This document shows, piece after piece, positions 5,753 to 62,635 of a stretch of 64,000 bases of DNA. The notes beneath the pieces were generated by a model, which did not search any database, was not told the origin of the DNA, and saw nothing but the letters and a program-made list of their open reading frames with translations. The stretch lies in NCBI GenBank assembly GCA_965112155.1, contig OZ218103.1. One strand, given 5' to 3'. Every line of letters starts with the position of its first letter. The first letter of the stretch is position 1. The translations under genes and the position numbers were made by a program. Source of the DNA: Podarcis liolepis. Lineage: Eukaryota.

Positions 5753-6260
5753 TAGCTTGCTGTGTTCTTGTCCTCCTGCCCTTGGGAAAGTGGGGGTTGG
5801 GTAAGAATCCCTTTCAGTGCAAGGGAGTGTCCGCATAATGGAATGTAGGTGAGTGGGAGGACAATGAAGCCTCCTCTAGTAGACAGCATGTACCGAGTGT
5901 CTCGTAAAGTAAATTGTTTGCACTGAGTTTCCACTGTTTACTCCTGCATTGAGTGCATGCCCAGAAGATCTTTGCCCACCTGCATGAGGGCTTGGAAGAG
6001 GCAGCCTGTCTCTGCAGGAAGCCGTGGGTCTGGTCACTTTTTAGGCTCATTACGAGTGGGTGGTGAAAGAGACAAGATGATGTCCTCGCTGTGGCTTGGA
6101 CTCAGCCTGCTTCACAAACGCTGCAGCCAGCAAGCTGCATTTGTTGCATCACAATAAAGCAGAGCATCACATCCCTTGAACAATGACTCGGTCCATCTCT
6201 TCTGTGTGGAGACTGTGTCACCAGGAACTGTGGGGCTCTTACGTGATTGCTCAACTGCAG

Positions 6261-6262
<2 letters not shown>

Positions 6263-6298
<36 letters not shown>
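6263..6298. repeat. (TG)n microsatellite
   Basis: Seen directly. Confidence 0.95.
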
Positions 6299-6302
<4 letters not shown>

Positions 6303-6415
6303 GAGAAGGCTAGAAGACAAGAGGGTTTAGAAATCTCACTGGGGAGAGAGGTTAAAAAGAAAGCACTACAAGTGATGTTAATGGTTTTGGGAGGAACTGC
6401 TATTCATTGTTATAG

Positions 6416-7412
6416 CAGTGTTTCCCAACCTTTTTTGGGCAAAGGCACACTTGTTTCATGAAAAAAATCTCGAGGCACACCACCATTACAGCCCCGTGAC
6501 GTCAGCGCGCAGCGTCACGCCGGGAGGGACGCACGAAAGTGTAAGTTTCAATTTTCCCCCCTCCCCCTTGCCTTCCTTCTGTGCCAACCGCCAAAAAGCC
6601 AAGAAAAAAGCCAAGACTTTAGGGCAGCAGGTCGACACGGAAGAAGCTCCTACCTAAGGACAGGTGCGACGGCCGTGTCCTCTTCTGCCACACTTGGCAG
6701 CCCTGCCTCACGGTCGTGACTCCCACCCTGATTTCTCCCCGCAGGTCGAGCGGCACAGGCAGCCCAATGTGTCCAGCCCAGACACAAGCCCCGCTTCCCC
6801 ACTCTAGATCCTGAATGCGACCAAGTGCTCTGGACTCCCGAGCAGGATGGGAAAGAGGACTCGCATCTGGTAGCCTCCAGGCTCCTCGCCTGCTCGAGGG
6901 ATGGCATTGCAGGCAAGCTGCCGGCCGTCGCCATCGCTGCCCCCTCATGCGAGTGGACCTGCCCAGAGTGGTGGGCTGGGGGAGGCTCGCTCTCTGTGGG
7001 GATGTGGCCCGCACGCGCGGCCCCGCTTCCTCCTGCCCAGGGCTGAGCTCCTTACCCGCGATCTCGGTCTCGCGCACGCGGATCCCACTTATTCCGAAGC
7101 TCGCACCACTAGCCGGGGCTCTCACACCGTGCCAGGGCGAGGCGGCGCGGCCCACTGACGTCATCGCGGCTCGCCGCCGCCCTCGACTTCCCTGTTCCCT
7201 CCCCTCCCTCGGGTCGCCGTGGTTACCGAGGACTGCAAGCTGCTCGGGCGAGCGTGGGGCATTAAGTGGGAGAAGGAAAATTAAAATTAAAACTCGCCTG
7301 AAGGCCGCCTCTCCGGATATGAAGCTATCTTTCGAATTTTTTAATTTTTCCCGCGGCACACCAGGCAACATCTCGCGGCACACTAGTGTGCCGCGGAACA
7401 GTGGTTGGGAAA
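6416..7412. mobile_element. Non-autonomous hAT element with CpG-rich interior; right end clipped
   Basis: Left end CAGTGTTTCCCAACC. Right end GGTTGGGAAA lacks the final CACTG and the TSD. Subterminal (C)GGCACAC repeats. Confidence 0.75.
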
Positions 7413-7433
7413 GAACTCCTCTCTCTCTCCCTC

Positions 7434-7481
<48 letters not shown>

Positions 7482-8887
7482 GGGGACCACCCAGTCCAGA
7501 TCTGACCTCAAATCAATTTGCAGGCAGGGCTAAACCCTACTGAACATCTGGATGGGGAAGGAGATTGTGTGTCTCCTCCCCCACCCCTAAGGAGAGCCAA
7601 AGTGTTCAGTCCTGTGGAGGTGCTGCTTCACAGGCTAAGGAACACTCTGCACCCCACAGGATCGAATCCTCCACTCACTAGCTGGTGAGCAGAGGATTCA
7701 CTCCTTCTGGGGCCTGCTTCCTTTCCTGCCCATGACAGAATAAGATCCACAAGTAGCCACTAAGCCTCTAAAACCCTTTTGTCGTTCCCATCCCTTGTAA
7801 TATGTGAACTGAAAACCTGATAACAAAAGAACTTTCCTGTGGGAAATGAACTGATTGCCTAAATGCTACAATGCGCCTCACTACTGAGGTTTGTTCCTAC
7901 CGTCACTGAAAAGGTTGTGTAAAACCGACTTTACCTTTGGACTTGTACATGCGGGCGAAGGCGGTTTTACACATACCTATGCAGAGCAACTCTTTGTAGT
8001 AGCTGCAGCACTTTTAAGTAACGTACCAGGAAAAAAGCAATTGCTTCTGAGTAGCTTGTTACTTGAAGCAGGTTACAGGAAGTTAGTTAGTCAGACTGTG
8101 CACTGAATCTCTTGATGCTAACATCCTGAGTACCGTGATGCAGCATTTTTATGCCTGACAGTATGCTTAAATGCTTACAGGCTTAAATTTACTCTTTTAT
8201 CATTATGATCAAAGAACTGTACAGCTTTGATTTGTACAATTTAAAAGTTACTATTTTCACATTTGTCATTGGAGCGTTCTGCCCTTTTCTACAGGGTCTC
8301 AGAGCTTGCGTGCACATTGTTGTTTCTGTGGAGTTGTGCGTGGTAACCTTAAAAGCCCTCTATGCATCAACAGGAGGGGTCTGAATTGTGCATCTTATGA
8401 GGCTCCGCTCCCCCTTTATTCTCTCCCAGGGTGGCCCTGCCCTCTGCCTGCCCCTCAGAGTCAGTGCATGAAAATGAGTCCCTCCTGTTCCTGTCCAGTT
8501 TCATTCACTATTCCACCTGCACCCGCTTATTCATTTGAGCAGCAGACAGCAGCAGAGGTGCAACAGGGGTCAAACTCCACAGAGATGGAGGTTTTAAGTA
8601 GCTCCAGCTTGCTACATTGATGGCTCTTTGCTCCCTGGCTGCGCAGTAAACAGCAAGAGAGAATGCAGAAGGGTGATCTTTCAGGTTGGAAGCCTGGTGA
8701 GATCTGATCTTTACTTTTCCCCCTTTTTTAGAAAGAAAGATGAGTAAAGTAAATGGTGAAGGAAACTGGTTTACTTCAGGTATTGCTTTAATTGAGTAGT
8801 TTTTGCCAAACAGGAAACCATGTGGGCATCTAATTTCAAGGGAAGGTATTCTGAATCAGATCTTTGGGTTGTTTTGTCAATAGCAGG

Positions 8888-17056: not shown

Positions 17057-19198
17057 CCCCCCCCTCCTCTTAGTGCACACATTTACATCCTGCTCTCGCT
17101 GAGCAGCAGTAGGAACAGAAGAGGGAAAGTCTGGGAAGGTTGGCTCTTTAGGGTTAAGAAACAAACATCTGTGCAATGTCAAACACACAGCATAGTAGAA
17201 ACAACGTTTACGATCACAGGGGTTTTCTATGCTAGCAATCCCTTGCTGGCAGATAAAAAATCCAAATTATATTACTGTAAGTACTACAACTTAGACAGTT
17301 TGCAAATGTTTGCTTCAAGCTCCGTGATGTTCATTGTGAAGGGACCCATGGTATTTCTCTTTTTTTTTAAATGTATTTTTATTAAATATTTTCTTGATTT
17401 CATCTCGCCACTGCCCCCCTCCCCACCACCACCTGAAGAATAGAGGGTGTAGCCTGAAGTGGAACACCAGTGCATGAGGAGAAGGGCTTCTTAACCCTTT
17501 CCCTTCACACAATATTTCAATTGAACCTCCCGCCCTGCCCCCCCCCAGCTGCTTTTACCCCACAAAATAGAAAATATAGGGGCACTCAATGTGTTTTTTT
17601 ATATGCCTATAGCTTTCTCTTAGGACAGGGTGCAGAACTTTTCTCTGCAAAGGCCACACTTCCTTTCAGCAATTTGTCAGGGGCCACACATCAGCGCTGG
17701 GTGGACCTGAAGCCAGTGATAGGAGGAACCAAAGCTAAAAAGTGGGCAGCCACCCACCTTCGCCACTCACTTCCTGCCATCTCCTTTTCTCTCCCATGCC
17801 CATCTGCCTGCCTGTCTAGTGGCCTGCTGAGGAACTGAGAGAGATCTCTCCCTTGCTAGAGATCCAGGCTCATTGCTGACAGGGGTTTTTTCACTTCTTC
17901 ACTTTCCATTGCTCCTTACTTTGTCAGATTTCCCCTCCCATTTTCCCCACATGAAATTAGGCTGTGTAAAATTAGGTCCTCAGTTTCTTACCGCATTTTA
18001 GGATTAGCCAAAGGTCAGACTCGGGAGGAAGGAACTGTTATCTTTCTCCTCACCCTATTTGTAGCAGATGGTGACTATGGGCTTATCCCCACCTCTGTTC
18101 GACCCTCCATTTCCCCCAGGAAAACCCGTGCTTTAGTGCTGAATCGGAACAATGGGCAATTTGGTTTTCTGCGGATTGCTGTTTGCTCCAGTTTAGCACC
18201 AAAGAGCTGGTTTTCTAGGGGGAAGAAGCAGCACAAAGGCAAAACCTCTCGGACCCATGCATAGAAAGCATGGGACAAGCAGAAAACCACTTGGGCCTCT
18301 GTTTTCTAGGATAAGCAGAAGTGTGGGGCGATTCCTAAGTTGAGCTCTGTTTGATTGAGCCGAGTCTGAGATAGGGAGGACCTGTTGGAGTTTTTAAAAC
18401 TTTTAAACAGTTGATTAATTTTTCTATTTAAAACCCCCACAAATAACTTTAAGAAAAAGAATGTTCCTGCTGTGTTCAAGCCAATAAAAGATGGGCAGCT
18501 TTTTGAACAGAGCAGGAGGGGAAAGACAAGCTAGTAAACTGCCATTCAGTTTGCTAATTAGCATATCCACCCAATGGGTTGCCAAGGCAAGAGGAATCCA
18601 TGCAGAGACCCCGTGTCTTACATTGTGGATTTGAATGTGAAGTGATCCACATGAGTAACATCCAGAAAGCACAGTCACAATACGTGGGCTGTGCCAAAAA
18701 GGCATTTGAATCCAGTTATTTTAGGGTTTTTTCCATTTGATGTGGATCTTGTGACAAAATTTTATTGTTCACGCTTGTTTCATCCTTATCCAGTCCCACA
18801 TGTGTAGGAAGGAAGGAAAGCACAAGCTTGCTTGCCTGGCTGGCTGTGTTAACTGTCAGGGCAAGAGAAATACTGGCAAAGCTGAACTTGTGACAAGGCT
18901 GAAGTATCACAGAGCCTCTGTTATTCCTCCCGAGGGCTGACATCTCTCCAGAGAGCTTTAAGTGTATCTCACAGAGTGAGGAGCTGGCCCAGAGCCCGGT
19001 GTTTCAAGCACAAAGAACCATCAGACCTGAAGAAGTACACAAGCCAGAATGTAGAGTGATTGGCACCCATTTTGTATCCCCTTGGGGATACAATTGTTCA
19101 GCAAGGTTTTAGTCAAAGGGGGAAATAAGAACTGGATTCATTAGAAAATCTTTCTTCATGGAACTGTTAATTCATCCAAGAATCAAAATGCCTTCCAA

Positions 19199-19339
19199 CA
19201 GTGGCGTAGCGTGGGTTGTCAGCACCCAGGGCAAGGCAAGTAATTTGCGCCCCCTAACCCGTGGATTTACGCCCCCTAACCCCCAGATGTTGCGGCCGGT
19301 GCGGCCGGCCCCCCCTGCACCCCCCACGCTACGCCACTG
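19199..19339 (-). mobile_element. hAT MITE, family B (inverted)
   Basis: Reverse complement of 14245-14390 with a perfect 8-bp TSD CCTTCCAA. Confidence 0.93.
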
Positions 19340-19690
19340 CCTTCCAATCTGGACTGTTAATGCAGTCAACAGGAGAGGCCCTGCTTGTGGTTCCACTGGT
19401 GGTGGCGGTGAGGTTTGTTGCACATGACAGGGCATTCTTGGTGTTGGCACCTTACCTGTGAAATCAGGTTGTCCCCACTCTAGTTCAACAACACAATTTG
19501 AAAACGAATGACTGGTGTTGTGACAGTATTATCTGCTGCTATTGTTATTGATGAGTATTTATTTGGTGTTTTGATGCATTGTCTTATGTCGTTAGCCACC
19601 CTGTGCTCTTGTTTTGGGAGTAAGTATGGGAAATAAAAATGACAATCTGAGAAATGCACAAATTAATGTAGGGCTCCTTTTCACCAGGTA

Positions 19691-21012
19691 GGGGGGAGGC
19701 GGGGCACATTGACGCACGGGGCACATTGATATACCAACAATATTTCAATATTGAGAAATGTTATTTGTGTCGTGACATCACTAAAACGTGTCTATACATG
19801 TGTGAGTACAACAGTTGTGACTGTGCCACCCGTTAGCCATTGGCGTTTGACAAGGGTAGGTGTGTTTTTAGCACGGCTAGCTAAAAAATTACGTGAAATG
19901 TAAAAGTGTTCCAACACTGTTTTACATCATTTACGTAGTTAAGATTTTAAAATACCAAAGGTAAGTTATTCCACTCAGTAATCAGGATTACACGTGATTT
20001 TTAAATAAGTTCTGTGGTTTTATTAATAGTTGTTAGTATTTTTGAAACTGTCTGTTGGGGCATTTTGATACACTAAGACACGGGGCACGTTGATACATAT
20101 AAAAGTGCCCCGCTAGTGTACAATAGTGGCCCAATATACAAGTTTGCATGAAATCTCTAAACTCATTAAATTTGAAACGGAAAAAAAACTGTTGTTTACT
20201 ACGCGGCCAAAGTCATTTCTAAATATAATATGACTGAATATCAAGTGTCATATCTCAGGAAAAAACCAGGATCTTGTATGTTTGTCTTCCCCGTTGTAGA
20301 AGATAAGGCAAGTGGATGTTGTTTTGCCGTTGCCAAAACCAAATTTCCCAAAGGGCACAACTCGAACATCATCTCTTTATACTTTTTCTATTGACTTAAG
20401 TGGATATAATGTGCAATAGAAGCTAAATGTTAAGTAATTATCTTATTTTTATAAGCATTTTGTTTAAATCACTGTTTTTTTACTAACTAACGTGAGTTCT
20501 TATACTTTTTAAGTTTTTACAAAGTTTTTTTTTATGGATAGGTGTTTGAGGAAAGATTAATATGTTTTGATGTTTTGTTAAGAAAACCTGTCATAAAGTC
20601 TATGATATGTGTGAAACACTGTTAGTTTTGATACGTAATTTAGATTTTAAGTAACAAATTGTAAGGCTGATTATTATCTCTCACAATAAAAATTGGTTTT
20701 TCATTAATTTTTTGCAAATAATTACCATTCTCATACAATTTACGCTTTGTATCAAAGTGCCCCGTCCAATGTATCAAAGTGCCCCGTAGGTGGGGCAGAA
20801 TGATACAAAACCCTTTTTTCTTTTCTTTTTTACTGAAGTCATTACATTCTCACTATCTTCTAACTTTATTGGTTCTTTTGATTGCTATTATAATATTGAT
20901 TAGTTATGCCATGCATCAAGCCAAATTTTTTATTATTTTATTATTTGACTCATTTTTTGTTACATGAAATATGAGATTAATTTTTTCCGTATCAATCTGC
21001 CCCACTTCCCCC
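19691..21012 (+). mobile_element. Internally deleted pogo/Fot1-like (Tc1/mariner superfamily) DNA transposon with a transposase C-terminal remnant
   Basis: TA on both sides (19689-90, 21013-14). Imperfect TIRs: GGGGGGAGGCGGGGCACATTGA and (reverse complement) GGGGGAAGTGGGGCAGATTGA. About 9 copies of a GGGGCAnnTTGATA-like motif. Frameshifted peptide at 20162-20419. Confidence 0.85.
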
Positions 21013-21175
21013 TATATAAAATGAGTTTAAGGCTTCAATCACATACCCACCTACCTAGGAGTAGGCCCCACTGAACTCCTTGTTACTTGCTTTTGAGCAG
21101 ACATCTTTAGGGTTATGCTGTTAGCCTGCATTTCTGTTGATATTTTGGAACCACACCCTTATGTGTCTGTTAGTA

Positions 21176-21412
21176 CATGGGTAGGCAAACTAATCTGGCC
21201 CAATCGCCTTCTAAATCCGGCCCGCGGACAGTCCGGGAATCAGCATGTTTTTACTTGAGTTGAATGTGTCCTTTTATTCAAAATGCATCTCTGGGTTATT
21301 TGTGGGGCATAGGAATACGTTCATCCCCCCCCAAAAAAAATATAGTCCGGCCCCCCACAAGGTCTGAGGGACAGTAGACCAGCCCCCTGCTGAAAAAGTT
21401 TGCTGACCCCTG
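21176..21412. mobile_element. hAT (Charlie-like) MITE
   Basis: CATGGGTAGGCAAACT...AGTTTGCTGACCCCTG with a perfect 8-bp TSD TGTTAGTA. Confidence 0.88.
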
Positions 21413-21819
21413 TGTTAGTATATCCCAAATCTGACCTCAATGTGTAAGCGGGGGGGGGGGTAGAGAGAGAGAGAGCTGTGTTTCAAGTAACATTTGCTAT
21501 GGGAATTTGAGGCAGACCATGTTCATTTGAACTAACCTTCAGATAATCCTAGAGGTTCTTATATTTGTCCTATGTCCCATGGATCTGTTAATGTAAACAA
21601 GTGGATCATTTCCTAGCTTTGCAGCTTGACAATACAGAGAAGCATATTGCAGTTTGAATAAAATTCCCTCCAGTTTCACAGGAGCTTGGCAGTAGCATTC
21701 AGTGTGGTACAGTGAATCAGTATTTATGGTATGATCAGATCTGGTTCAGCTCCTGCTGAAATTTTTGCTCAAAAATTATGGTGTATTAGAGGACAAGCAA
21801 AACAAGATTCATTTTCAAT

Positions 21820-28601: not shown

Positions 28602-29991
28602 TAGGGTGTGCTTAATTGCCGAAATGAGAGAGGTGCCTGGAAGTCATGCCCATTTCTGTAGATTTTCTGCAGGTTAGAGAGAAGTAGCTGTGATTTGTTT
28701 AGTGGTGAAGAAGGGAAGGGAAGATACTCTGCGCATACCCAGAAGCACCTCCTGTCTTATTATTGTTGCGTGTGTTTCAGGGTCAAGCACTGGTATGTGA
28801 GTTCAGGTGTCTTCCCGTTACCTCATTGGTGCGTATAACTGATTTCCAATCTGTTCGGGAAATAGAGTAGCCCTGACGGTTACCTTTAACACACAAGAAG
28901 CAGGGCATGAAAAAGTGCTTAAAGGCAAAGGACAACTTGTGCAAGAAATAGCTGATATAGATGGGAAATCAGCAGAGAAGGGGCATTAGGTAATACAAAG
29001 TTGGGTAATGGGATAAACAGTGTCAAATCAGCTCCTAGCATTAATCAAACAAGGGCTGGATTTGAAGATGCTTTTGTTTCAGTGTGATTTTCAGCATGCA
29101 CACAACAATTCTCCTTATCCAGGTGGCAGCCTGCACCTCCCCCCTGCTAAATTAGGATTTTCCCAGTCTCTGAATAATCTGAAGAGGAAAGAAAACCCAA
29201 TATTAAATTGCATATTGGACACATTGTGTGGCCAGATTTTTTCACATATGTTGTAACATTTCGCTGGGTGCCATTTATCATCATGCCCCCTACTTCCATT
29301 TTGCATGTTTATGGCATTTATTTATTTATTTATTTATTTATTTATTTTAAAGACTCTTTTATGCAGAACTGCTCTTTTATAAAACAGCTGCATTAAAAAT
29401 TAAAATAAAATTTGCCCTTGCAGGTACATGAGGTGGGGAAGGAAAATGGGAGGAAAGGAAGCAGCAGCCTTTCATGTGAGTGACTCCAAATCCTTGCCTG
29501 GCTTAGAGCAACACACACATACTTTAATTATTATGTTTGACCGCTCTTTTGTGCAAATAATGAAAAACTTGTAATAAAAAAATATAAAAGGTGCCTACAC
29601 GCAGTAAATTGACGTCAGGTTTCCTGGCTTGGAGTGGCACACACATGTTTAAAAATTACTTTTGATCGCTCTTTTGTGCAAAACTGGCCGATTGAAATCT
29701 TGTATTACAAAAATAAAAGAATTTTCTGTGCCTACAATGGAACTCAAGTTTCCAGGACTTATGGTGGGCAAAAAAGCACGAATTGAAGGGAGGGGTACCA
29801 AATACATCCCATCAAGCCCTGCTCACTTGTGTAGCCAGGAAACAATGAGATAGATTTTTGGAGGTCCTGTTTAGAGGAAGGCACATATATAGAAATCATG
29901 ATCTACATACACATTAACACCCTAGTTAATGTGCAGATTTCCAGTGGATGCCAGATTCCACCTCTGGTTCTCTTTCTACCTCTTTTTGCTT

Positions 29992-46051: not shown

Positions 46052-46197
46052 GAGATATCTCAGTTGGTAGAGCATGAGACTCTTAATCTCAGAGTTGTGG
46101 GTTTGAGCCTCACATTGGACAAAAGATTCCTGCATTGCAGGGGGTCGGACAAGATGACCCTTGTGGTCCCTTCCAACTTTACAGTTCTATGATTCTA
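46052..46197 (+). mobile_element. tRNA-Lys(CTT)-derived SINE with CR1-type tail (second copy at about 27250-27390)
   Basis: Head CTCAGTTGGTAGAGCATGAGACTCTTAATCTCAG...GGTTTGAGCC. Tail GGTCCCTTCCAAC...TTCTATGATTCTA. Confidence 0.82.
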
Positions 46198-60043: not shown

Positions 60044-60970
60044 CTGCCCACCACTGGCATGTGGCCCCCAAAAGGTTGCCCAAAAAGAAATGTGGCCTTT
60101 GGTCTGAAAAACTTTCCCCACATCTGGTGCAAACTATGGATTTTATCATGCATGCTTTTTCTCTCATTGACCTTAGCAGCATTCAAGGCTTATGCACCAG
60201 TGTACCAAACTGCAGCCAGTAAGAGTAACTGAGCAGTAGGAATAAACTTGCACACAACCACAGCAAGTTTTCAAGGGGGTGGGGGGGAGAACACTTTTGA
60301 CACAATTTTATTGATAGACCATCTGCAGATTTTCCTGGAATAGAGGCATACACAATAATTGAAAACGATGTTCCTTTTTGCACTGCTGCTAAAGGTACAA
60401 GAGCCCCAATAGAGGCTGAGGAAAGGGGAGAAAGCCAGGGAAAAATGGAACATTATATGTAAGCCATCCCTTTCTCATTTCTCCCTCAGGCAGTACAGAG
60501 TATCAAATAACGCTGAACTGAAGCTGGTCTTGCACTGAGGTATCTGGGCTTGTGCTGAGATGAGCAACTGCCTGCCCCGCAAACCATGTTCCTGAGAAGT
60601 TTCACATTACTTCTCCTGGAGAGCCCTATAGCTTTCTCTGCTGCCAAGATACAGCAGGCAGGCATCAGTGGTTTTAAAGCAGGTTTGGGGAACCTTCGAC
60701 TCTCCAGATGTTGCAAAACCACACCTCTCATCCGTCTCAGCAAGCATGGCCAAGGGCTGAGGGTGACGGGAGGTGTGGTTCAGCAAAATTGGGAAGGCCA
60801 AAAGTTCCCCTCACATGTTCTAAACAGAGATGTAACATAACTATTTATCTGAAAAGTGGCCCTTTTCTTTTATCCTAGATGTAGGCTGACAAGGTGAAAA
60901 AAAAGCAGAGCTACACCGACCCCCAAAAGACACACACATAAATCTTGCTTTAAGAGCCATCCATGAAACT

Positions 60971-61010
<40 letters not shown>

Positions 61011-61040
61011 TTTATTTATTGAATTGAATTGAATTGAATT
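60971..61040. repeat. Compound microsatellite (CTTA)n-(TTTA)n-(GAATT)n
   Basis: Seen directly, immediately upstream of the Sauria SINE. Confidence 0.9.
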
Positions 61041-61064
61041 TATATACTACCCTATACCCAATAT

Positions 61065-61306
61065 CTCCTGCCAACCTAGCAGTTCGAAAGCACGTCAAAT
61101 GCAAGTAGATAAATAGGTACCGCTCTGGCGGGAAGGTAAACGATGTTTCCATGCGCTGCTCTGGTTCGCCAGAAGCGGCTTAGTCATGCTGGCCACATGA
61201 CCCAGAAGCTGTACGCTGGCTCCCTCAGCCAATAAAGCGAGATGAGCGCCGCAACCCCAGAGTCAGCCACGACTGGACCTAATGGTCAGGGGTCCCTTTA
61301 CCTTTA
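61065..61306 (+). mobile_element. Sauria SINE, 5'-truncated
   Basis: Recognised core CCAACCTAGCAGTTCGAAAGCA...GCAAGTAGATAAATAGGTACC...GCTGGCCACATGACC with an (ACCTTT)n tail. Confidence 0.88.
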
Positions 61307-61649
61307 TACCCTATATATAAATTCTTGCCTGCATCGGTGCACTGGCTCAAGTGGGGTGCCTTCTCCTCTTACATTTTTACGGTAACCCATCCAATACCTT
61401 CAGCAGAAACTATTCCCAAAATATTGGCAGGTAGGTTGCAGCAACATTGGACAAAGGAGTGCACAAGAAAGCAGGAATTCATGTGGACTTGTAGCAGCCC
61501 GTTCAAACGGCTCTGTTGGTTCCGAGATCATGGCAGCTAGCCTTGTTGCCAGCCACCTGCAGAATGAAGCTTTTGATTGATTGCTCACCAATCAAAACAC
61601 ACACAAGCTGCCCCTTTAAAATATGCTCCAGGCTGAGGACCTGGAAGAG

Positions 61650-62060
61650 CGGAGCTGCGAGTGCAGAAGGAAGGAGTGGAGCGCTGAAAGGAAGGAGATT
61701 AACGGTGAACAGGCTGCCAATGTGACCCATATAGAGTATTTTGAGCAGCGCGCCTTTCTGACGGCGACTGAGCGGGACGGGGGGAAGCGAGCGAGCCCAG
61801 CCTCTTCCTACCATTGGGTGGGTTGCGGCAGCTCTGGCCAATCGCAGCGCGCCTTCTGTAGAGGCGGGAGACGCACAGCCGGCTGAGCAGCGGCGGCGGC
61901 TGTTCTTTCCTACCTGTCTGTCAATGGAGCGGCGGCTCTTCTCGCGGCGGCTGGGTGAGTAAATGCGTAGAATTTGAAACCGAGAGACGTTGGCCGTCAG
62001 TTGACCCGAGGGGAGGGACAGCTCGTGTTGCCTGGTCACCGCTCCGTTGCCATTTGATTT
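61650..62060 (+). promoter_or_regulatory. CpG-island promoter and first exon of an unidentified downstream gene
   Basis: CpG-dense, with no TIRs or TSD. ATTGG near 61813, CCAAT near 61838, GC-box-like GAGGCGGGA at 61861, GCG runs, and a consensus donor CTGG|GTGAGT at 61954/61955. Confidence 0.7.
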
Positions 62061-62162
62061 CAAATACCGACCCCCTCCTTGGCATGGCATATAAGGGCTA
62101 AGAATATTCATGGCCAAGGGTGGCTCCTTGAGATAAATGGTACTGAGGGGCAGGGATATGGA

Positions 62163-62635
62163 CAGGGCCGGGTTTAGGTTTGATGAGGCCCTAAGCTCCT
62201 GAAGGTAATGGGGCCCTTTATATGTCCAGCTGTCCTTTGTCAACAACAAATTGTCACAGTTTTTTGTGTTGAATATCTGCTAAACAGTACGGTAATTTAT
62301 GGACCAATTGCTCATAACAAAATATATATTTTATCGAAGTAATTGTTGAACTGAAAAACAATTAAGAAGTATATTAATAGTGAAATAATTATTAAGCTCT
62401 AACTTAAAATGATTTTTATTCATAACAAAATGCAAACACATTGGCATTTGGAAATGACAAAAGTTCCTTTAGATACCCAGTTTACAAAGACTCATCTATT
62501 TTAGTTGTTTTTTATCTTATATTTTGGAAATGTACATCCAAGTTTTGTTTTTTCTTTAATTTTTTTGGGGGGGTTGGCCAAGAAAGTGCAGCCCTAAGCT
62601 ATAGCTTGTTTAGCTTATACGTAAATCCGGCACTG
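62163..62635. mobile_element. Non-autonomous hAT element with AT-rich interior
   Basis: CAGGGCCGGGTTTA...TAAATCCGGCACTG. TSD GATATGGA/GATATGGG. GCCCTAAGC repeated near both ends. Confidence 0.85.

Follow-up and report, generated by a model that had tools for sequence, protein, structure and literature searches.

A dead, internally deleted pogo-type transposon in the Podarcis liolepis genome, likely of horizontal origin from an arthropod-type lineage

The window analyzed here is a 64,000-nt stretch of the Podarcis liolepis genome (assembly GCA_965112155.1, contig OZ218103.1). Between positions 19691 and 21012 it contains a discrete block of 1322 bp with a TA dinucleotide abutting each end. The features of this block, apart from its coding remnant, are as follows:

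19689–19690, no strand: left TA, one half of a putative 2-bp target-site duplication, from the sequence
19691–21012, plus strand (that of the transposase remnant): the whole 1322-bp element, classed as a non-autonomous pogo-type transposon; read depth about 30–40x inside versus about 1–3x in the unique flank
19691–19714, plus strand: left terminal inverted repeat (TIR), G-rich, holding the first 14-mer (19701–19714); aligns with the reverse complement of 20989–21012
19718–19731, plus strand: second outer 14-mer, an exact GGGGCACATTGATA and a putative transposase-binding site, from the 14-mer scan
20057–20111, no strand: inner left cluster of three 14-mers in orientations +, +, −; the first two recur in inverted orientation at 20748–20785
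20685–20690, plus strand: AATAAA, possibly the polyadenylation signal of the former transposase gene, from the sequence
20750–20805, no strand: inner right cluster of three 14-mers in orientations −, −, +, from the 14-mer scan
20989–21012, minus strand: right TIR, holding the 14-mer at 20990–21003, from sequence and alignment
21013–21014, no strand: right TA of the putative target-site duplication, from the sequence

The TA pairs at 19689–19690 and 21013–21014 constitute a putative 2-bp target-site duplication, and the 2-bp TA target site of the pogo superfamily is present at both flanks. The TIRs begin with GGGGGGAGGCGGGGCACATTGA at the left end and, read as the reverse complement, with GGGGGAAGTGGGGCAGATTGA at the right end. 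They are imperfect, G-rich and about 23 bp long, and align with one gap and three mismatches; terminal inverted repeats are likewise a property of the pogo superfamily. In the available text of Gao et al. (2020; PMC7386202), both the Tc1/mariner and the pogo superfamilies target TA, and TIRs of 40 bp or less are assigned to type 1, a class that the TIRs of this element fit. The flanks do not fit an 8-bp hAT duplication, a 3-bp PIF duplication or a TTAA site as alternative ends. The idea of a second element nested between the inner 14-mer clusters was likewise rejected, the inner left end having no G-rich terminus.

The 14-mer GGGGCACRTTGATA occurs nine times inside the element with two or fewer mismatches, against a chance expectation of 0.66 for the 64 kb; a tenth match lies outside the element, at 29276. 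The left tip has two of the nine, the right tip one and each inner cluster three, the inner copies sitting 366–421 bp from the left end and 208–265 bp from the right end. This arrangement suggests that the 14-mers served as outer and inner transposase-binding sites. Beyond the 14-mer clusters, no continuous stretch of inverted similarity was found between the two arms of the element. The 5′ non-coding part also contains a consensus-like splice donor, CAAAG|GTAAGT (19955–19967), and a pyrimidine-rich AG acceptor (20016–20030), which may together delimit what was once a 5′ intron in the transposase gene.

The block differs from its surroundings in composition. Its GC fraction is 0.33, compared with 0.456 in the 3 kb to the left, 0.392 in the 3 kb to the right and 0.441 in the whole window. 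It holds 26 CpGs at an observed/expected ratio of 0.72, versus 0.27 on the left, 0.23 on the right and 0.28 across the window, and, were the flank ratio to apply, the Poisson probability of at least 26 CpGs would be about 1e-5. A similar ratio is reached elsewhere in the window only in two CpG-island-like regions, near 6–7 kb and 61 kb. The initial annotation had described a discrete, TA-flanked block with G-rich TIRs, AT-rich and with about two dozen CpGs among CpG-depleted flanks, and these measurements bear out that description. High CpG combined with low GC is compatible with foreign DNA of relatively young age. In most other copies of the family, however, six of the 26 CpGs read TpG, CpA or ApG, so the CpG count of the window copy serves only as a rough clock. 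As to the two CpG-island-like regions themselves (6000–7600 and 60800–62300), they have observed/expected ratios of 0.65–0.71 and GC fractions of 0.46–0.59, with (CA)n/(GT)n runs near 6150–6300. No coding signal was found in either of them, nor by Pfam in the eight longest open reading frames of the window.

The coding remnant occupies 20162–20419. Its three-piece translation, proposed previously with two frameshifts, was reproduced exactly in frames 1, 3 and 1, with a stop codon at 20417–20419:

20162–20185, plus strand: tail piece A, LIKFETEK, frame 1, and then the first frameshift, which is undone in about one third of family reads by the absence of 2 nt at 20180
20185–20313, plus strand: tail piece B, frame 3, 43 codons; 82% identical to the tail of the Parnassius protein P0060
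20312–20416, plus strand: tail piece C, frame 1, 35 codons, after the second frameshift; 82–85% identical to P0012/P0037 and 74% to P0060

The family reads without the 2 nt at 20180 indicate that the remnant derives from a once-intact frame. At the second frameshift, about four codons present in the relatives are missing. A phmmer search with the 46-residue stretch encoded by 20176–20313, which contains piece B, against 1.84 billion representative proteins gave 31 matches with E < 1e-3 (best 7e-11), located at the extreme C-terminus of the matched proteins. P0010, P0032, P0036, P0046 and P0060, whose C-termini the tail pieces match, all have the DDE_1 domain (PF03184). Pfam searches with the three short pieces yielded no meaningful match (a single one, to a phage ring protein at E 0.015, was below threshold), and the ESM Atlas search with the 46-residue stretch was uninformative, with a best score of 0.75. 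When the full-length relatives P0046, P0032, P0037 and P0038 were compared with the window by tblastn, they matched 20182–20416 only; hence just the last ~88 codons have been kept and ~590 codons have been deleted. The same comparison finds the DDE catalytic and DNA-binding domains absent from the window copy. Judged by its sequence, the remnant represents the final ~88 codons of a transposase gene of the pogo superfamily, and the window copy is dead, internally deleted and non-autonomous. Both the internal deletion and the assignment to the C-terminal tail of pogo/Fot1-like transposases common in insects, as opposed to Tigger, had been anticipated in the initial annotation, and the named family members are indeed almost all insects.

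The domain structure that the parent element would have had can be read from the relatives. Pfam finds HTH_psq, HTH_Tnp_Tc5 and DDE_1 in P0032, and HTH_psq and DDE_1 in P0046. A motif search confined to the relatives places the catalytic Asp residues 108 and 35 residues apart (DD35D) in P0060, P0046, P0032, P0059, P0058 and P0036, and the spacing of 35 residues between the second and third Asp recurs in P0044. The transposases P0046 (Galleria), P0036 (Maniola) and P0001/P0035 (Cryptolaemus) are 92–98% identical over their shared parts.

The tail of the relatives (P0003, residues 1–89) is a conserved C-terminal domain of about 89 residues that has no Pfam family. An AlphaFold2 model of this tail (m3f366e9a35a0, built from a 25-row alignment) is all-beta, with a mean pLDDT of 73.8. 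Foldseek gave no match to the model in the PDB at E ≤ 0.001, and its weak top rows were tandem Agenet and Tudor domains. When the model was compared with 48,161 chains by VIA-align, BAH domains filled 10 of the first 11 rows (Z 4.4–5.7, 68–80 residues aligned), a range in which, as for any Z below 8, a match can mean merely a common arrangement. These rows include MTA1, DNMT1, ZMET2, EBS, AIPP3, ORC1, PBRM1 and TNRC18 and are followed by chromo, Tudor and PWWP domains. The model thus offers a weak hint, a lead rather than a finding, that the tail might be a chromatin-reader-like barrel.

Public reads allow the insertion to be followed outside the assembly. Twenty runs from eight studies and 10 organisms hold 21–32% of the 31-mers of the element, and none of the 20 reaches half. 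Four runs were aligned to 18900–21800. Contigs from X15 (organism H) span both junctions, covering 19317–19728 with one difference and 20888–21220 with two; this near identity indicates that organism H is the species of the window, perhaps even the sample it came from. In X1 (organism A), a 2068-bp contig spans the left junction, covering 19338–19762 with 10 differences in 425 bp and two gaps, from which it follows that the insertion is common to a relative whose flank is ~1.4–2.4% different. The insertion therefore predates the split of at least two related taxa, and the earlier expectation of a real germ-line insertion with spanned junctions is upheld at both ends in X15 and at the left end in X1.

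Read depth at the left boundary climbs from ~1–3x to ~30–40x. In raw whole-genome reads of organisms E and K it is ~31–32x over the whole 1.3 kb compared with ~1.6x in the unique flank, which corresponds to ~20 copies at 85% identity or more; word depths in the X15 and X1 contigs suggest 20–45 copies. Because depth is even across the open reading frame remnant, the deleted 1.3-kb form is the unit that was amplified. Contig pieces place the other family copies ~10–12% from the window copy. The window copy carries private substitutions, seen at 25 or more positions as letters that nearly all family reads contradict, and at 20204, 20238 and 20360 the family-majority letters agree with the residues of insects or P0012, from which the window copy departs. 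With squamate substitution rates that we assume here, ~5% divergence per copy would suggest, as a rough estimate, tens of millions of years. Given the shared insertion and the divergence among copies, the family is young only in relative terms. The description of the element as recent holds to that extent and no further.

Several other repeats lie close by. The X1 contig is precisely without 19189–19337, a gap that matches a 141-bp hAT-type MITE at 19199–19339 with the TIR CAGTGGCGTAGCGTGGG and the 8-bp duplication CCTTCCAA at 19191–19198 and 19340–19347. Its depth is ~6000x in runs with ~1.6x genome coverage, and the X1 contig shows its precise empty site while carrying the pogo insertion. 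This MITE is a very high-copy family with insertions younger than the split of the taxa. A second very high-copy, palindromic MITE lies at ~21176–21413, with ends resembling CAGGGGTCAGCAAACT and a depth of ~8000–16000x; the consensus of loose read ends at 21193 marks an internal deletion in the window copy relative to its family. Directly to the right of the pogo element, 21034–21130 is repeated at ~14x, all reads having A at 21064. This segment resembles the tail end of a further interspersed repeat, and the pogo element accordingly sits beside or inside older repeat sequence. The sole Rfam match in the window, a tRNA-like one at 46056–46113 (31.1 bits against a gathering threshold of 29), probably represents a SINE head derived from a tRNA.

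What kind of element this is, and where it came from, must be judged largely from its protein relatives. Two thirds of the protein matches are run assemblies without an organism name. The named ones are all from arthropods, with the exception of one Hydra and one diatom protein. Lepidoptera are represented by Parnassius, Galleria, Maniola, Eumeta and Mythimna (also Plutella, Vanessa, Pieris, Spodoptera and others) and Coleoptera by Cryptolaemus, Aquatica, Gonioctena and Henosepilachna (also Coccinella, Onthophagus, Leptinotarsa and others); the named insects amount to the genera outside these brackets and ~25 more. Two Hemiptera and one tick make up the other arthropods. No vertebrate name, including Tigger/TIGD, occurs among the named matches of the tail and relative protein searches, which is weak evidence because vertebrate annotations usually mask transposons. 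The relatives closest to the window tail are listed below:

P0012 and P0033, run assemblies: 81–84% identical to the window tail (63 residues)
P0037, run assembly: 80% identical
P0038, run assembly: 77% identical
P0060, Parnassius mnemosyne, 719 residues, full length: 77–78% identical, the closest named relative
P0046 and P0036, Galleria mellonella and Maniola hyperantus: 72–73% identical
P0001, Cryptolaemus montrouzieri: ~71% identical

The nearest of these, P0012/P0033, P0037 and P0038, could themselves be vertebrate. Identity between the lizard and butterfly tails (77–78%, at the protein level and over ~84 residues only) exceeds that of many insect–insect pairs, which reach just 38–63%; Galleria compared with Aquatica or Gonioctena, for example, gives 49–63%. 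The similarity is in this sense higher than vertical descent would predict. In a maximum-likelihood tree of the tails (89 columns), the window sequence has a very short branch, of 0.075, and falls among the Parnassius, Eumeta, Galleria, Maniola and Cryptolaemus rows, with bootstraps of 86–90. The remaining moth and beetle rows branch at a greater distance, with those of the tick and the Hemiptera outermost. The tree has a midpoint root and one lizard tip, it gives no strongly supported clade with the window row, and the nesting of the window row hinges on where the root is placed, so that its topology is supportive but not decisive.

Exchange among the insects themselves is also apparent from these comparisons. 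The Galleria and Maniola proteins share one 90% cluster and are ~92–94% identical to the Cryptolaemus copies, and Pieris with Gonioctena (together with a Vanessa row) and Spodoptera with Coccinella form pairs on the tail tree. Such pairings imply that this pogo clade has probably been transferred recently between insect orders, the family moving readily between butterflies, moths and beetles. A distant relative is present in the tick Haemaphysalis longicornis as 58 member sequences.

Taken together, we interpret the block as a fixed, dead, non-autonomous pogo element whose family is of arthropod type and was horizontally transferred into the lizard lineage, a reading to which we assign a probability of roughly 0.72. 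A tail that lies among lepidopteran and coleopteran elements at 72–78% identity most likely belongs to a lineage that arrived by horizontal transfer, and an origin from an arthropod-type lineage is likely on the protein comparisons. The earlier proposal of acquisition from an invertebrate is upheld in part, by the distances and the tree position at the protein level. With a best named identity of 78% over ~84 residues, no donor can be named and the transfer was not very recent.

Three other accounts of the block can be set against this interpretation. Arthropod contamination or misassembly in the lizard scaffold would agree with a block whose GC and CpG are unlike those of its flanks. It is so improbable as to be negligible, and is excluded by the junctions bridged into unique flank in X15 (both) and X1 (left), which come from different studies and organisms; in addition, the family is present at ~20–45 copies in four runs and partly in the 20 runs of eight studies, and the TA/TIR junctions are precise. 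Vertical inheritance of an old pogo lineage within the vertebrates is improbable, though far less so than an artefact. The insect look of the element would then reflect unmasked insect entries and few vertebrate ones in the databases, and both the many matches from run assemblies without an organism name and the shared insertion, with copies too far apart to be brand new, could be accommodated. A separation of more than 500 My, however, would not leave a tail branch of 0.075 or a likeness to moth and butterfly proteins greater than that of many insect–insect pairs. A CpG ratio of 0.72 in a genome at 0.28 and a total of only ~20–45 copies also speak against long vertical residence, and the available text of Gao et al. 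(2020; PMC7386202) reports only Passer and Tigger as widespread in vertebrates.

Somewhat less remote, but still unlikely, is a horizontal transfer whose immediate donor was something other than an arthropod, for instance a different vertebrate, a virus or one of the parasites (ticks, helminths), or one in which the element passed from reptile to insect. The closest tails (P0012, P0037 and P0038) come from run assemblies without an organism name, and the family evidently jumps hosts, as the Galleria/Maniola/Cryptolaemus, Pieris/Gonioctena and Spodoptera/Coccinella groupings illustrate; the many tick sequences would also agree with such a source. The tick protein is only 35% identical, however, and searches of viral contigs (with P0046 as query) and of metagenome contigs (with the tail alignment) found no relatives. 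Moreover, the diversity of the clade lies in insects and all of its named close relatives are insects.

If an arthropod-type lineage did enter the lizards horizontally, the following sequence of events can be proposed. The parent element would have encoded a transposase of ~680–720 residues, and an internal deletion left its 5′ non-coding part, the last ~88 codons and its 3′ non-coding part. Entry into the lizard germ line would have been from an arthropod-type pool, either directly or via an intermediate host. An autonomous parent would have supplied transposase in trans to mobilize the 1.3-kb derivative, the protein presumably recognizing the terminal and inner-cluster copies of GGGGCACRTTGATA via its psq/Tc5 helix-turn-helix domains, and the derivative would have moved by cut-and-paste into TA sites. 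Amplification to ~20–45 copies took place within closely related lizards. The window copy was inserted before at least two taxa split and later gained its two frameshifts and point substitutions.

A more ambitious version of this account is tentative, and we consider it doubtful as a whole. It would make the element the first recorded vertebrate entry of an insect HTH_psq/DD35D pogo clade with a C-terminal beta-barrel tail, with an insect-eating lacertid lineage as recipient and, as source, a Lepidoptera/Coleoptera pool exchanging the element between orders at >90% protein identity; the tail would be a BAH/Tudor-like chromatin reader that tethers the transposase. The locus itself, a dead insertion, implies no function. 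Its interest lies in a probable cross-phylum transposon transfer into squamates, involving a pogo lineage that the available text of Gao et al. (2020; PMC7386202) does not report in vertebrates. Such cases help to map the routes of horizontal transfer, for example through diet or parasites. The transposases of the relatives also share an uncharacterized conserved C-terminal beta domain, for which chromatin binding is a candidate role.

Among known systems, the Fot/Fot-like family, which we take to be the 'TcMar-Fot1' class of RepeatMasker, resembles the element in that HTH_psq with HTH_Tnp_Tc5 and DD35D are found in the relatives, not in the window copy. In the available text of Gao et al. (2020; PMC7386202), HTH_psq and/or HTH_Tnp_Tc5 and DD35D are the traits of this family, with TA among its target-site duplications. 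There, Fot is assigned to fungi and Fot-like to protists and algae, not to animals, whereas the relatives of our element are insects. The insect elements may correspond to the 'unclassified pogo' of that survey, the available text of which does not describe the conserved C-terminal beta domain of ~89 residues. The pogo superfamily as a whole (IS630-Tc1-mariner group; Gao et al., 2020, Mob DNA, PMC7386202) shares TA flanks and short TIRs with the element, and DDE_1 with psq/Tc5 helix-turn-helix domains with its relatives; the window copy is unlike it in having lost the whole catalytic and DNA-binding part. Vertebrate Tigger, TIGD, POGK and CENPB belong to the same superfamily and have the DDE_1 core. 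According to the available text of Gao et al. (2020; PMC7386202), Tigger combines CENP-B_N with HTH_Tnp_Tc5. The relatives of the element, in contrast, are arthropod proteins in which Pfam finds HTH_psq and not CENP-B_N, and they do not have the Tigger combination.

Sleeping Beauty is an IR/DR-type Tc1 element with outer and inner transposase-binding sites, and the layout of the 14-mers recalls this arrangement by analogy. Insects also harbor unclassified pogo elements with very long TIRs (392–856 bp), restricted to them in the available text of Gao et al. (2020; PMC7386202). The binding-site-like 14-mers at the tips and in the inner clusters may liken our element to both of these; outside the clusters, no continuous inverted similarity was found between its arms.

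Documented cases of DNA transposon transfer between arthropods and tetrapods include SPIN, OposCharlie1 and mariners in which Anolis and blood-sucking bugs take part. Between arthropods and squamates, the transfer of Tc1/mariner-type and hAT elements is likewise well documented, and non-autonomous deletion derivatives are the rule. A literature search for the pogo family in lizards and for the insect pogo clade in vertebrates found nothing specific. The present case differs from SPIN, OposCharlie1 and the mariners in the family involved and in being known at the protein level only, with no near-identical donor. It resembles them in presenting a young, low-copy squamate DNA transposon with its nearest kin in insects. 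Transfer of this general kind is already known, and, as far as the literature searched goes, an insect pogo clade in a vertebrate would be the new part.
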